From the NCBI RefSeq assembly GCF_964204645.1, contig NC_134036.1, positions 1,364,001-1,428,000 of the forward strand: a stretch of 64,000 nt of DNA, in the 5' to 3' direction. Both the position numbers and the translations under genes were made by a program. Under the pieces are notes generated by a model. The model saw nothing but the letters and a program-made list of their open reading frames with translations, did not search any database and was not told the origin of the DNA. This document shows, piece after piece, positions 6,657-52,800 of the stretch. This DNA is from Tubulanus polymorphus (taxonomy: Eukaryota > Animalia > Nemertea). Position 1 is the first letter of the stretch. Each line of letters opens with the position of its first letter.

Positions 6657-9600
6657 ATGTATCGTGAAAGAAACATCTTTCGTTTTTTGCTGTTGTTTAT
6701 TCTATGTCTATTCATCACAAACACATCAGGTGAGTTAATCAATACTCATTGGTTCCAGAGCTGTAAAAAATGCGGAAATCGTAAATATTGTATTGTATTT
6801 CAATCCATAAGAGAGCACCGATGATAACCAGAGAAAGAAGAGAATTATTGTTGGAGAACAGCATTTGGAGAATATTTTTGTAAAATAATCTTCTTTTTGT
6901 CATTTCAGCGAAATGTTTTGGGAAGAGTTGTACTGGTTGGGAGTGTCATTGCAGTAATACAGCTGTGGACCAATGTCCAATAAGAAGTCGGAATACAGAT
7001 GGCGCTTTAACGTGTCCAAATCCCAATTCTGCATGTGAGTCTACAATAAAAACTCCGTATCCCTGGACACCACCAGGATGGACCGGACCAGCTTGTCAAA
7101 TCGGTAAGTTTTCTGTATCAACTGTTTCTGCTCCAGTAAACCGGGATCAGGTCAAATATCACTGAACCTCGGATTTATATCAAATTAACGGATTAACTCC
7201 ATGAAAGCCTTTACAAAAATAAATCTTAAAGAATTAGGAATGAATGATGTAAATTTCATTAGATTTATCTCAGATTAACCGAATAACACTAAAACTAATC
7301 CGTATACGGATTAACGTCACTAATCCATAAGCGGGAAAAAAATTTATTGGTAAAAATATCATAGATTTATGAAACTTCCGGGAACTGTCAACGAACTGAG
7401 ATCAACTCGCGATGAAATAATCAAATTATTTCATCGCGTAAAGAAAAAAATGTTAGTTTTGTTTAATTCTAGTTGAAATTGTGAAATAACTTTGAATCAA
7501 TTTGTTTTTGTTCGTTTTGAAAATTCGTGAAATAATTCAAATCTCTTATTCACAAAATGTGTTTTGTAGGAAACGTGGCTCGTGGTAAAACAGTTGCAAT
7601 GTCATCCATTCTCAGGATTGAAAGTGACTATCGCGGTAGTAAATGTACAGATGGTCAGATGGTAAGTGGAATGTGTCACACTAAAGATAATCAAGACGCC
7701 TGGATTAGAATTGATCTCGGTGCTCAATACGTCGTACATGAAGTTACACCTTGGGATAGAAGAGACGTGACTGGTTGCACCGATAACCCGTGGAATTCGT
7801 GGAGTGAGTACAAATTATTAATGTTGATTGATCATCTAGGCCAAATCTGATAGAAAAAATATATAACTTCAGCTCGAAAAGCCTGGTTGAATATAAACCA
7901 AGTTTAGATGAGTGATTTTTTCAGAAAAGTTTGACCCGAGATAAGTTGAAACTTTGAACTCTACCGAAATATCGAACTCAGAGTCAACAATAATCAATAA
8001 TCTGTAAATAAAGTCAGTTCGACAACAATGTGTCTGTGGTATCCATGGATGACAACTTCGTAAAAAATACGTCATTGGAATTTTGAATCAACTTTTTCGA
8101 CGTGTCAACATTTTCAGTCGATAACTATAAATTTGTGCTAGGGGCCGTGCGCCTGTCGAAAACAATTAATTTATTTTTATATTTCTTTTTCAAAGAGTTT
8201 GAACAGAATTGTTTTGCACCCAAAGCAATCTTCAGCTTCCCGGATGTCGTGCATTATCATTTGTTTTCATCTTTCAAAGCTTCTTAATTCTTTTTCTCAG
8301 AAAAACGTTCGCGCAACCTGGAGATTCGAGTTGGAGATGAATATGGCAATGATACAAGTATTTCTACATCTAACCAGAAATGTGCTTACCATGGCTTACC
8401 CCCTCTCTGTGGTACACATAAAACATTAGCATGCAGCCCAGGTCCTATAGTTGGACGATACGTCACCGTTCAACACAAGAACATTGGCTACGCAGAGTCT
8501 CTCGCACTGGCAGAAATAGAAGTTATCGGGTTCAAATATATCGGTAAGTTTTACATGACTATATATATGTGTAAACTATAAAGAGTATATGGAAATGGAT
8601 TTTGCTTTTCTCGAAAATATTCAGTGACTTTTATATAGAATTTACCCCCGAACGAAAAATTTTGAAATGAAAAGAAGTCTCCCTTTATTACCAAAGTTTG
8701 GTTTTTAAGCACCCATTCATTTATGGATTTATTATTGTTAAAATTAGATCGATTTTCATAAAAATATTCAGTGACTTGTAATGGGAATATATTTCCGAAA
8801 GATCGAACGATTCATATTTTTCGTATCAAATTTGAATTTCTGTTTAGCACCCGGTGATTGTAGTAAGGGATCGAACTCATTTGGATGTATGATTGAATGT
8901 AGATGTTACAACAGTGAAAGTTGTAACTATTTGAGTGGTATCTGTGAATCTGGCTGTTCACAGAATTACATCGGAAAGTGGTGCGAGTCAGGTATATTAC
9001 ACTGAATCATAGATTCCTGGGAATCTCACTTCCTATTCCCGAAATATAGTAACCAATATGAATCGAAAATGATACCAAGTAAAAAAAAACCGAAAGTAAA
9101 AGATCCTTACCCTTTATTTTATTCGATTCACCTGAAATTAACATCTCAGATTTCTTTTTCAGAATTGAAATCGTTTTCTCAATTAACAAAATCTGCGCTG
9201 ACAGATAACAGTGTAAAAGTCAGATGGAGAGCTTACTCGGGTTCTGTAGTAGATTCAGGACGTGGTACTGTCAGCGTTCAGTATCTAGTCGTTTATCGTA
9301 AAATATCAGAAAAGACTTGGACTAATCAGGAAACTGCAGGAGTCCTTACACATCGCACAATTACTGGTTTAACTCCTAATACCGGGTATAAGATAGCTGT
9401 TAGACTACAGAAAATAGTGAACAATCAACTTATATCAACTGCGAGTCTGACTAGTACAGTATTAACTTTGTGTGCAGGTAAAACCCCTCATTCTAATAAA
9501 CTCTTAATCATCATTTCAAACACAGAATTGTGTTGAACATGTTTGTTTTACTGTAGATCCATTAAACGGTCCTAAAGGTGTTCGTGTGGTGTCCACAGCG

Positions 9601-49843: not shown

Positions 49844-52800
49844 ATGTACCGTGAAAGAAACATCTTTCGTTTTCTGCTGTTGTTGATTCTATGTTTATTC
49901 ATCACAAACACATCAGGTGAGTTTATCAATAATCGTTGGTTCCAGAGCTGTAAAAAATGCGGAAATCGTAAATTGTACGATTTCAATCCATAAGAGAGCA
50001 CCGATGATAACCAGAGAAAGAAGAGAATTATTGTTGGAGAACAGCATTTGGAGAATATTTTTGTAAAATAATCTTCTTTTTGTCATTTCAGCGAAATGTT
50101 TTGGGAAGAGTTGTACTGGTTGGGAGTGTCATTGCAGTAATACAGCCGTGGACGAATGTCCAATGATAGGTCAGAATACAGATGGCGCTTTAACGTGTCC
50201 AAATCCTAACACTGCATGTGAGTCTACAATAAAAACTCCGTATCCCTGGACACCACCAGGATGGACCGGACCAGCTTGTCAAATCGGTAAGTTTTCTGTA
50301 TCATCTGTTTCTGCTCCAGTAAACCGGGGTCAGGTCAAATATCACTGAACCTCGGATTTATATCAGATTAACGGATTAACTCCGTAAAAGCCTTTACAAA
50401 AATAAATCTAAAAGAAATACAAATGAATGATGTAAATTTCATTAGATTTATCTCAGATTAACCGAATAACACTAAAACTAATCCGTATACGGATTAACGT
50501 CACTAATCCGTAAGCGGGAATTATTTATTTATTGGTAAAAATATATATTTATGATTGATCCGGGAACTGAGATCAACTCTAATTATTTCATAGCGCAAAG
50601 AAAAAATTGTTACTTTTGTTTGATTTTATTTGAAATCATGAAATAACTTTGAATCAATTTGTTTTTGTTCGTCTTGAAAATTCGTGAAATAATTCAAATC
50701 TCTTATTCACAAAATGTGTTTTGTAGGAAACGTGGCTCGTGGTAAAACAGTTACAGCGTCATCCACTCACCCGGGGTATACTGATTCCGGTAGTAAATGT
50801 ACAGATGGTAGGACGGTAACTTTCTATGATCTATGTCACACTGAAGAGGATCAAAACGCCTGGATAAGAATTGATCTCGGAACTCAATGCGTGGTACAAA
50901 AAGTTACACTTTGGGATAGACCAGATGCGACTGGTTGCACCGATAACCCTGGAGACGAGTGGAGTGAGTACAAATTATTAATGTTGATTGATCATCTAGG
51001 CCAAATCTGATAGAAAAAGAATATATAACTTCAGCTCGAAAAGCCTGGTTGAATATAAACCAAGTTTAGATGAGTGATTTTTTTCAGAAAAGTTTGACCC
51101 GAGAAACTTTGAACTCTACCGAAATATCGAACTCTGAGTCATCAATAATCAATAATCTGTAAATAAAGTCAGTTCGACAACAATGTGTCTGTGGTATCCA
51201 TGGATGACAACTTCGTAAAAAATACGTCATTGGAAAATCTTGAATCAACTTTTTCAACGTGTCAACATTTTCAGTCGATAACAATAAATTTGTGTTAGGG
51301 GCCGTGCGCCTGTCGAAAACAATTAATTTATTTTTATATTTCTTCTTCTAAAGAATTTGAATAGAATTGTTTTGCACCCAAAGCAATCTTCAGCTTCCCG
51401 GATGTCGTGCATTATTATTTGTTTTCATCTTTCAAAGCTTCTTAATTCTTTTTCTAAGAAAAACGTTCGCGCAACCTGGAGATTCGAGTTGGAAATGAAT
51501 ATGGCACCAATACAAGTATTTCTACATCTAACCAGGAATGTGCTTACCAGGGTCCCCCTCTCTGTGGTAGGCATAAAACATTAGCGTGCAGCCCAGGTCC
51601 TATAGTTGGACGATACGTCACCGTTCAACACAAGAACATTAGTAATGCAGAGTATCTCAACCTGGCAGAAATAGAAGTTATCGGGTTCAAATATATCGGT
51701 AAGTTTTACATGACTATATATATGTGTAAACTATAAAGAGTATGGAAATGGATTTTGCTTTTCTCGAAAATATTCAGTGACTTGTATATAGAATTTACCC
51801 CCGAACGAAAAATTTTGAAATGAAAAGAAGTCTCCCTTTATTACCAAAATTTTGTTTTAAGCACCCATTCATTTAAGGATTATATTATTGTTAAAATAAG
51901 ATCGATTTTCATAAAAATATTCAGTGACTTGTAATGGGAATGTATTTCCGAATGTTCAAACAGTTCATATTTTCGTATCAAATTTGAATTTCTGTTTAGC
52001 ACCCGGTGGTTGCAGTAAGGGATCGAACTCATTTGGATGTATGATTGAATGTAGATGTTACAACAATGAAAGTTGTAACTATTTGAGTGGGATCTGTGAA
52101 TCTGGCTGTTCACAGAATTACATCGGAAAGTGGTGCGAGTCAGGTATATTACACTGAATCAGAGATTCCTTAGAATCTCGGTCCCAACTGTAAACGACTG
52201 AAAGTAAAGATCCTTGTTCATCTAAAACTAACATCAATCTATTTTCAGAATTTAAGTTGTTTTCGCTATTAACAGAATCTGCGCTGACAGATAACAGTGT
52301 AAGAGTCGGTTGGACAGCTTACTCGGGTTCTGTAGTAGATTCAGGACGTGGTACTGTCAGCGTTCTGTATCAAGTCGTTTATCGTAAGATATCAGAAAAG
52401 ACTTGGACTAATCAGGAAACTGCAGGAGTCCTTACACATCACACAATTACTGGTTTAACTCCTTATACCAGGTATAAGATAGCTGTTAGACTACAGAAAT
52501 TAGTGAACGGTCAACTTATATCAACTGCGAGTCTGACTAGTATGACTAGTACAGTATTAACTTTGTGTGCAGGTAAAACCCCTGATTCTAATAAACTCTT
52601 AAACTGTAAATGAGTAAAACATGTTGCTGTCGTCATCAAGTAGATGTCAATTCACAGAATCGCATTACTTAATTTGTCTGTGGTGTTTATTTCAGTACCA
52701 GGACCTCCCGCTTCTCTCGACTTCTCATCTACAAGGGATACATTCCAAACAACATTGACATGGACACCACCAAACCGTCCAAATGGTGACATCATTAATT

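Follow-up and report, generated by a model that had tools for sequence, protein, structure and literature searches.

Loop hypervariability in the F-type lectin heads of a tandem receptor array of the nemertean Tubulanus polymorphus

How do a few loops of a protein domain come to differ strongly between neighbouring gene copies when the codons that separate them stay nearly the same? The question is raised by a stretch of 64,000 nucleotides from the genome of the nemertean Tubulanus polymorphus (C12:1364001-1428000; this whole stretch is the window, and coordinates are relative to it unless a contig is named), in which five two-exon F-type lectin modules are spread across four tandem receptor genes. 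A sequence-only reading of the window had described hypervariability confined to five loops around the lectin binding pocket, had identified these with the complementarity-determining regions (CDRs) 1-5 of eel fucolectins, and had taken the excess of loop over intron divergence as the mark of diversifying selection. The answer to which we incline, with rather more confidence than doubt, is that selection favouring diversity acts on loop cassettes that ring the pocket and are exchanged between paralogs, the scaffold and a basic triad being kept by purifying selection.

Lectin modules, their fold and the seat of variability

Five in-frame copies of the N-terminal scaffold motif of the first lectin exon (exon A) start at 7572, 11232, 23792, 37274 and 50729, with none expected by chance, and all the modules lie on the forward strand. 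In module 1a, the first head of gene 1, exon A (7570-7803) has a translation identical to residues 91-167 of the RefSeq protein P0154 and carries loops 1 to 4 at 7608-7640, 7656-7673, 7683-7697 and 7767-7803; exon B (8301-8543) carries loop 5 at 8486-8506 and a further, indel-rich loop, the sixth, at about 8336-8380. The second head of the same gene, module 1b, has its exons at 11230-11463 (P0154 from residue 577 onward) and 11961-12203. Module 2 of gene 2 lies at 23790-24020, matching P0158, and at 24607-24834, where the sixth loop is in its short form; module 3 of gene 3 at 37272-37496, matching P0161, and at 38067-38306; and module 4 of gene 4 at 50727-50963 and 51459-51698, its exon B being 100% identical to that of module 5b just past the window. 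The three RefSeq proteins of the species contain exact translations of the lectin exons of modules 1a and 1b, 2 and 3, respectively.

The strings originally read for loops 1 to 4 and for the scaffold motifs are exact in the translations of the five copies, and the same is true of loop 5 (GYAESLA, SNAEYLA, GKAEYLH, GRPEYLN and SNAEYLN in modules 1a, 1b, 2, 3 and 4), of the splice sites, and of the exon lengths (234/231/225/237 for exon A and 243/228/240/240 for exon B), whose changes all keep frame. Exon A runs from an AG acceptor to TGG(A/C) before a GTGAGT donor, exon B from AG and an initial AA to ATCG before GTAAGT, and the two join in a phase-1 split codon for Lys or Gln, as in the RefSeq models. 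The family extends well beyond the window: at least 36 matches to exon A occur in the same assembly, 27 of 30 fetched loci have the same splice architecture and open frames, and frame and splice sites are kept in all 27 family copies that were compared from this genome. In one paralog, L020 (1120-1728, minus strand), the 168-nt lectin intron is itself open in frame, leaving the whole domain as one open reading frame.

What is this domain? Whole-domain queries were taken from public RefSeq proteins, P0003 and P0154 among them, or from the open frame of L020. A profile built on 120 domains, with that of the family at its head, found striped bass FBP32 (3CQO) at 1.2e-89 and eel agglutinin (1K12) at 3.9e-42 in the PDB. 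The domain of module 1a alone found the same two by sequence search at 2e-9 and 3e-5; single exons gave only sub-threshold F5/8-type-C hits in Pfam and weak ones in the PDB sequence search. AlphaFold2 models of a paralog domain and of module 1a have mean predicted local distance difference test (pLDDT) values of 90.9 and 91.5, and the module 1a model matches 3CQO with Z 20.9 (rmsd 1.9 over 145 residues) and 1K12 with Z 19.8 (rmsd 2.1 A over 141 residues), so that the structure prediction proposed earlier as a check against the Anguilla agglutinin bears the fold out. The leading structural matches are all F-type lectin domains (FTLDs): 3CQO and 1K12, then lectinolysin and the SpX modules. On these models the family domain is an F-type lectin with a predicted jelly-roll beta-barrel fold.

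Direct and profile alignment to 1K12 place the invariant His of CHT on His52, the Arg-x-Asp of WDR on Arg79/Asp81 and the Arg of KKR on Arg86, with the His-Arg spacing equal to that of His52-Arg79. In terms of the fucose motif His...Arg-x-Asp-x4-(Arg/Lys), the His and the Arg-x-Asp are present, but the x4 spacer has grown to at least 12 residues through the expansion of loop 4. In the cation motif h2DGx the Asp-Gly (of TDG) is invariant, as is a Glu equivalent to Glu147; the Cys146 position is Ala, and Cys-Thr rather than small hydrophobics precede the DG. Among paralogs outside the window some lack motif residues: L007 (C9:4327259, minus strand) has Leu for the pocket His, and L024 and L026 are without the Asp of Arg-x-Asp. 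The family lectins may bind sugar, and the heads may differ in specificity.

On the same alignment loop 1 falls on 1K12 residues 22-34 (Leu23, Glu26 and His27 included), loop 2 on 40-49 (with Phe45 and Tyr46), loop 3 on 53-59, directly after His52, loop 4 on 80-85 (with the Cys82-Cys83 pair) and loop 5 on 137-144. The contact residues published for CDR1, CDR2 and CDR4 of eel agglutinin are contained in 22-34, 40-49 and 80-85 (PMC5712786). The equation of the five loops with the eel CDRs is thus borne out for loops 1, 2 and 4; that loop 3 is CDR3 and loop 5 CDR5 is suggested by their order and the strand topology, residue-level definitions of these two having been found in neither of two open reviews. 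The sixth loop would by topology lie at the bottom of the barrel, at residues 96-105 of the Anguilla anguilla agglutinin (AAA).

Entropy, alignment and codon models were all taken over 24 distinct paralogous modules. Across these the scaffold is almost invariant, and loops 1, 2 and 4 vary in sequence as well as in length. The five loops make up 51 of 169 columns (30%) and hold 60% of the amino-acid entropy, the mean being 1.43 bits in the loops and 0.42 bits elsewhere (circular-shift test 0.007). The word ‘confined’ was nevertheless too strong: the sixth loop, which lies in exon B after the EIRVG strand and ahead of the first Cys of that exon, accounts for another 14% of the entropy, and of the 23 exon-B columns that vary among the five window modules, 18 are outside loop 5.

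In nucleotide p-distance the window copies differ by 0.40 over the exon-A loops (0.31-0.49 for single loops), by 0.24 over loop 5 and by 0.065 over the scaffold. Nonsynonymous divergence (dN) reaches 0.33-0.50 in the loops and 0.03-0.05 in the scaffold, where synonymous divergence (dS) is 0.08-0.16, and the divergence K of the flanking introns is 0.02-0.16. That the loops have diverged more than the adjacent introns therefore holds, and by a wide margin over either intron. The scaffold is, as had been said, almost unchanged; for the intron this is only roughly so, K being 0.03-0.09 over the upstream 600 bp and up to 0.16 in the intron between the lectin exons. A sliding-window profile of divergence peaks on exon A, and taken whole that exon has dN 0.235 and dS 0.262, with dN 0.035-0.084 and dS 0.056-0.141 in all other exons, those of both phosphatase domains included.

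Tests for selection and exchange among the loops

Does this divergence bespeak selection? Codon models were fitted with our own implementation of the Goldman-Yang likelihood, which reproduces the IQ-TREE log-likelihood under M0 exactly and holds branch lengths fixed up to a scale factor; exons A and B were aligned separately, the sole exception being one run of the pairwise homoplasy index (PHI) that needs only the order of sites. Under M0 the ratio omega for exon A is 1.12. M2a improves on M1a with a likelihood-ratio test (LRT) statistic of 174, assigning 26% of sites to omega 5.3, and every site with posterior above 0.9 is in loops 1-4; for exon B the statistic is 14.9. On ungapped columns only, the statistic is 106 and the loop omega 1.76 (p 7e-4). 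A partition model in which the loops have their own synonymous rate gives omega 0.35 for the scaffold and 1.70 for the loops (p 1.6e-4), loops 3 and 4 being significant singly (omega 3.6, p 0.01, and 2.45, p 0.001). The sequence-only reading had asked for a recombination-aware version of the site-model analysis; with a separate tree for each of five segments the statistic is 152 for the loop 1 segment, 20.5 for that of loops 2-3 and 7.9 for that of loop 4, whereas the two halves of exon B give 2.8 (the first, not significant) and 10.7 (the one with loop 5). The signal thus outlasts the change of trees. In a site-wise test of the fixed effects likelihood type, with site-specific synonymous rates, the purifying sites are nearly all in the scaffold. 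There is a nonsynonymous excess, and diversifying selection on the exon-A loops taken together is supported.

Several observations pull the other way. Loops 1, 2 and 5 do not individually exceed one (1.48, not significant; 0.98; 1.03), and the site-wise test finds only 4 loop sites at p<0.05, though with 24 sequences it has little power. The sixth loop, with omega 0.92, is variable though off the pocket by topology. On the same tree synonymous divergence in the loops is raised 2.6-fold, and 4-5-fold in loops 1-2; the loop alignments are uncertain where indels are abundant; and random-site LRTs are inflated by recombination, which is strong in this family. No RNA reads were found over the lectin exons in the runs mapped to the window, expression resting on the computational models of RefSeq. 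The claim of diversifying selection thus stands for the exon-A loops pooled and for loops 3 and 4 alone, and not for loops 1, 2 and 5. Pairwise loop dN/dS is only 0.8-1.5 because synonymous divergence is raised in the loops; these Nei-Gojobori values were set aside as unreliable, many codons differing at two or three positions.

The raised synonymous rate invites the thought that the loops simply mutate more, by indel-associated mutagenesis, by selection-free conversion of patches templated on diverged donors, or by targeted or somatic hypermutation. The 2.6- to 5-fold elevation would suit this, as would the abundance of in-frame indels and the clustering of multi-nucleotide changes: exon B of module 1a and that of 1b are the same but for five changes packed into 15 nt of loop 5 (8486-8500 against 12146-12160) and a single synonymous one. 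Misaligned codons and tree mismatch are, however, expected to yield some of the synonymous excess, and heightened mutation by itself explains neither an omega above one nor the keeping of frame by every indel; no repeat, hairpin or motif that would mark the loops was seen, though no search was aimed at such. We regard this account as quite improbable.

Recombination itself is plainly visible. PHI gives p <=0.001 for exon A and 0.014 for exon B, and the breakpoints of similarity lie at the edges of exon A and beside loop 5. From the intron that follows exon A, through exon B and further on, modules 4 and 5b have virtually the same sequence, and yet their exons A are massively different. In two distant paralogs the first 120 nt of exon A agree to the letter, although the introns on either side cannot be aligned. 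Past the loop-5 changes module 1b is nearer to paralog L012 than to 1a, the breakpoint adjoining the loop. For each window module the nearest paralog varies by segment, and several loops are without a close relative in the assembly; a single loop may match that of an otherwise different paralog at 99-100% identity, as loop 1 of module 2 does with L021 (99%) and loop 4 of module 3 with L022 (100%). For loop 4 of module 4 the nearest is a copy on another contig, at 93%. The loops thus have mosaic origins.

Over all pairs the proportion of nonsynonymous differences in the loops (pN about 0.35) and of synonymous differences in the scaffold (pS about 0.1) is independent of intron divergence, which ranges from 0.03 to 0.46. 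Such flatness is what concerted evolution leaves behind when all members exchange sequence, and therefore loops that outdiverge the adjacent intron are not in themselves proof of accelerated evolution in situ. The argument from loop against intron to selection is accordingly sound in its observation and weaker in its conclusion, the pattern being largely a product of the mosaic history told by PHI, the breakpoints and the shared loops.

Might the loops then be under no selection at all? They could tolerate nearly any sequence, with omega about one, and show the true and old age of the family, exon-biased conversion and purifying selection keeping the scaffold, synonymous sites included, artificially alike, so that the loops would only look fast. 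The scaffold is indeed homogenised, its pS being about 0.1 whether the adjacent intron differs by 3% or cannot be aligned; loop dS rises with dN, for a pairwise omega near one; loops 2, 5 and the sixth fit omega about one; and the site-wise test is weak. Relaxed constraint sits badly, however, with a pooled omega of 1.7-1.76 in the exon-A loops measured against their own synonymous rate (p 2e-4 to 7e-4) and with the values of 3.6 and 2.45 for loops 3 and 4. The islands of scaffold among the loops, moreover, span no more than 3-5 codons (KCTDG, CHT), and conversion could not homogenise stretches so short without reaching the loops; it should therefore also erase the differences between loops unless selection preserves them. 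Relaxed constraint is in our judgement unlikely, though it is the foremost of the alternatives.

Selection on exchanged cassettes, which we prefer, may be pictured as follows. The jelly-roll scaffold and the basic triad, which in eel agglutinin holds the axial 4-OH of the sugar, would be held by purifying selection, and the loops ringing the pocket (CDR1, CDR2, the loop after the His and the much expanded CDR4) would be kept different between copies. Non-allelic gene conversion or unequal crossing-over would transfer segments of exon A, even single loops, among paralogs, and this exchange would homogenise the flanks and the scaffold, with selection favouring loop sequences that are new or different, as the omega above one for the exon-A loops as a whole suggests. 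What might result is a receptor repertoire, probably with a common fucose-like core specificity and with extended glycan specificities that differ. On this reading the locus is a clean case of concerted evolution and diversity-preserving selection a few codons apart.

The array, its reads and the phosphatase tail

Compared with itself, the window proves to be a tandem array whose units measure about 13.4 kb. The 1740-aa paralog P0003, mapped on the window by tblastn, together with Pfam on exon translations, gives a common series of exons in each unit: Cys-rich, two lectin, EGF-like, fibronectin type III (FN3), a PTPRU-type membrane-proximal FN3, transmembrane and two protein tyrosine phosphatase (PTP). 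Gene 1, on the forward strand like the others, runs from its Cys-rich exon to the stop region at 6905-19020 (tblastn of P0003, Pfam and P0154), the signal-peptide exon being unmapped. Its domains are ordered Cys-rich, lectin, EGF-like and FN3, the whole set repeated, then membrane-proximal FN3, transmembrane segment and two PTP domains: at 6905-13135 the Cys-rich, lectin, EGF and FN3 exons are duplicated in frame, and it is because of this internal duplication of unit 1 that the RefSeq model P0154 has two lectin heads. A long (TA)n/(TATG)n microsatellite, at about 10180-10540, marks the junction. Gene 2 (23127-30574) has the architecture of gene 1 but one lectin head, and was placed, like gene 3 (36632-43967), by tblastn of P0003; gene 4 (50088-57398) was placed by self-comparison as well. 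A fifth unit begins at about 57985 and leaves the window at its edge.

The 5' part of each unit (1329-6900 in unit 1) has no match to the receptor protein. These first 5.5 kb are 96-99.6% identical among units, far above the gene bodies, and unit 2 is without about 2.4 kb of them (the equivalent of 4231-6614). Further along the contig, 57-87 kb downstream, the lectin exons of modules 1 and 2 recur without a difference, in changed order, at C12:1458550, 1461992 and 1444173 (L002, L003 and L016); these copies are either a recent segmental duplication or a duplication in the assembly.

Of the sequencing runs mapped to the window, X2 and X3 behave like DNA. Spliced, RNA-like contigs (X5, with GT..AG joints) were found on the PTP exons of unit 4 only. 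In run X6, from an independent individual, depth at >=97% identity is about 13x but sinks to 2-4x within 50400-51000, in the 3' half of module 4 exon A and in part of the intron upstream of it, which could reflect an allelic difference at a hypervariable exon or uneven cross-mapping among paralogs; since paralogs cross-map at 97%, variant calls from X6 were excluded as polymorphism data.

It is here that one must ask whether assembly errors, collapsed or duplicated haplotypes, or misalignment could mimic hypervariability. The exact duplicates of modules 1 and 2 and the dip in X6 are what such an artefact might leave behind. The 27 copies compared are, however, without exception open, correctly spliced and compatible with the fold; a 129-nt contig from run X3 matches module 4 exon A at 50828-50956 without a difference; the RefSeq models reproduce the exons; and the results hold on ungapped columns. 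An artefact is largely refuted and to our minds scarcely credible.

The phosphatase tail of these receptors has a peculiarity of its own. The catalytic Cys of the first PTP domain (D1) is Gly (codon ggc, 17149-17151 in unit 1), within a ten-residue motif found in all four window genes, the equivalent sites of units 2-4 closing the exons that precede 28800, 42191 and 55591. The D1 Cys in HCx5R that characterises classical receptor PTPs is thus absent from the window genes; their WPD loop is intact. In the paralogs P0003 and P0153, at 0.27-0.30 Mb, the D1 Cys is kept, P0003 being encoded by L026, one of the loci without the Asp of the sugar motif, and its D1 staying of the active type. To judge from these residues the window receptors are probably pseudophosphatases of a substrate-trapping kind, which would bind phosphotyrosine substrates rather than dephosphorylate them.

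To what end? A role in recognition of non-self, of gametes or of one cell by another would fit. A fuller version of the idea is that the array is a repertoire specific to the nemertean lineage and serves allorecognition or the recognition of non-self or of gametes. Its glycan receptors would have signalling-dead, substrate-trapping tails, and their loop cassettes would be assorted by templated gene conversion among dozens of germline modules and kept diverse by selection; this we offer tentatively, as possible rather than probable.

Comparison with known systems

Hypervariable loops on a conserved F-type scaffold are already known, from eel serum lectins and from oyster sperm bindin. In the F-lectin repeats of the sperm bindin of Crassostrea gigas there is positive selection around the fucose pocket and recombination between repeats (as summarised in PMC5712786). 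The Tubulanus family is alike in that its selected sites cluster round the fucose pocket, its modules recombine and its His/Arg/Arg triad is mostly kept: an omega above one at pooled loop sites and recombination between paralogs are both found, and so is the concentration of variability in pocket-ringing loops, with one extra variable loop that is off the pocket by topology. Bindin, however, is a secreted, acrosomal product of one or few genes with 1-5 tandem repeats and alternative splicing, and Tubulanus has transmembrane receptors with two PTP-like domains, at least 27 germline modules in tandem gene arrays, a domain split by a phase-1 intron, and a CDR4 that is long and variable.

With the eel the likeness to the Anguilla anguilla agglutinin (1K12) is in the fold, the His52-Arg79 spacing, the Arg86 equivalent and the variability of CDR1 and CDR2. 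Among eFL-1 to eFL-7 of A. japonica the variability of isoforms is highest in CDR1 and CDR2, whose length is kept, and CDR4 is strictly conserved (PMC5712786). In Tubulanus, by contrast, CDR4 is variable and longer by an insertion of at least 6-10 residues, CDR1 and CDR2 vary in length, and partner 146 of the Cys50-Cys146 bridge of the agglutinin is Ala; new invariant Cys residues stand ahead of the DG motif, within loop 4 and in the PLC loop. The eel fucolectins are, besides, soluble serum lectins, unlike these receptors. The best match in both sequence and structure (E 1e-89; Z 20.9) is the binary F-type lectin FBP32 of striped bass, which is a soluble two-domain lectin without a receptor context or a known hypervariable gene array.

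Towards the other end of the molecule the resemblance is to receptor PTPs (the RefSeq names are PTPRK/T/D-like) and to STYX-type pseudophosphatases, with FN3 repeats, the PTPRU-type membrane-proximal FN3, the transmembrane segment and tandem D1/D2 with WPD loop; the differences are an F-type lectin as N-terminal recognition module in place of MAM/Ig, and the change of the D1 Cys to Gly. Among the best 150 FTLD-bearing cluster representatives, that of Tubulanus is the only one with a PTP domain, and in the literature on lectin-phosphatase fusions and on the T. polymorphus genome nothing relevant was found.

Other invertebrates have diversified recognition families: the FREPs of snails, the VCBPs of amphioxus and the 185/333 genes of urchins are multigene, vary on the ligand surface, and have had gene conversion or recombination proposed as their diversifier. 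Tubulanus resembles them by this general description only, the folds being different. What it adds to the known F-type systems is a new and little-studied phylum, Nemertea, the receptor pseudophosphatase context, the scale of the germline array, the split-exon structure and a hypervariable, expanded CDR4. If the heads differ in glycan specificity, the array would stand as a new candidate among the diversified families of recognition receptors in spiralians and as a natural library on how the F-lectin pocket can be retuned; and if the repertoire reading is true, nature would have arrived at a functional analogue of the other diversified receptor families of invertebrates on a previously undescribed chassis, an F-type lectin joined to a receptor PTP.

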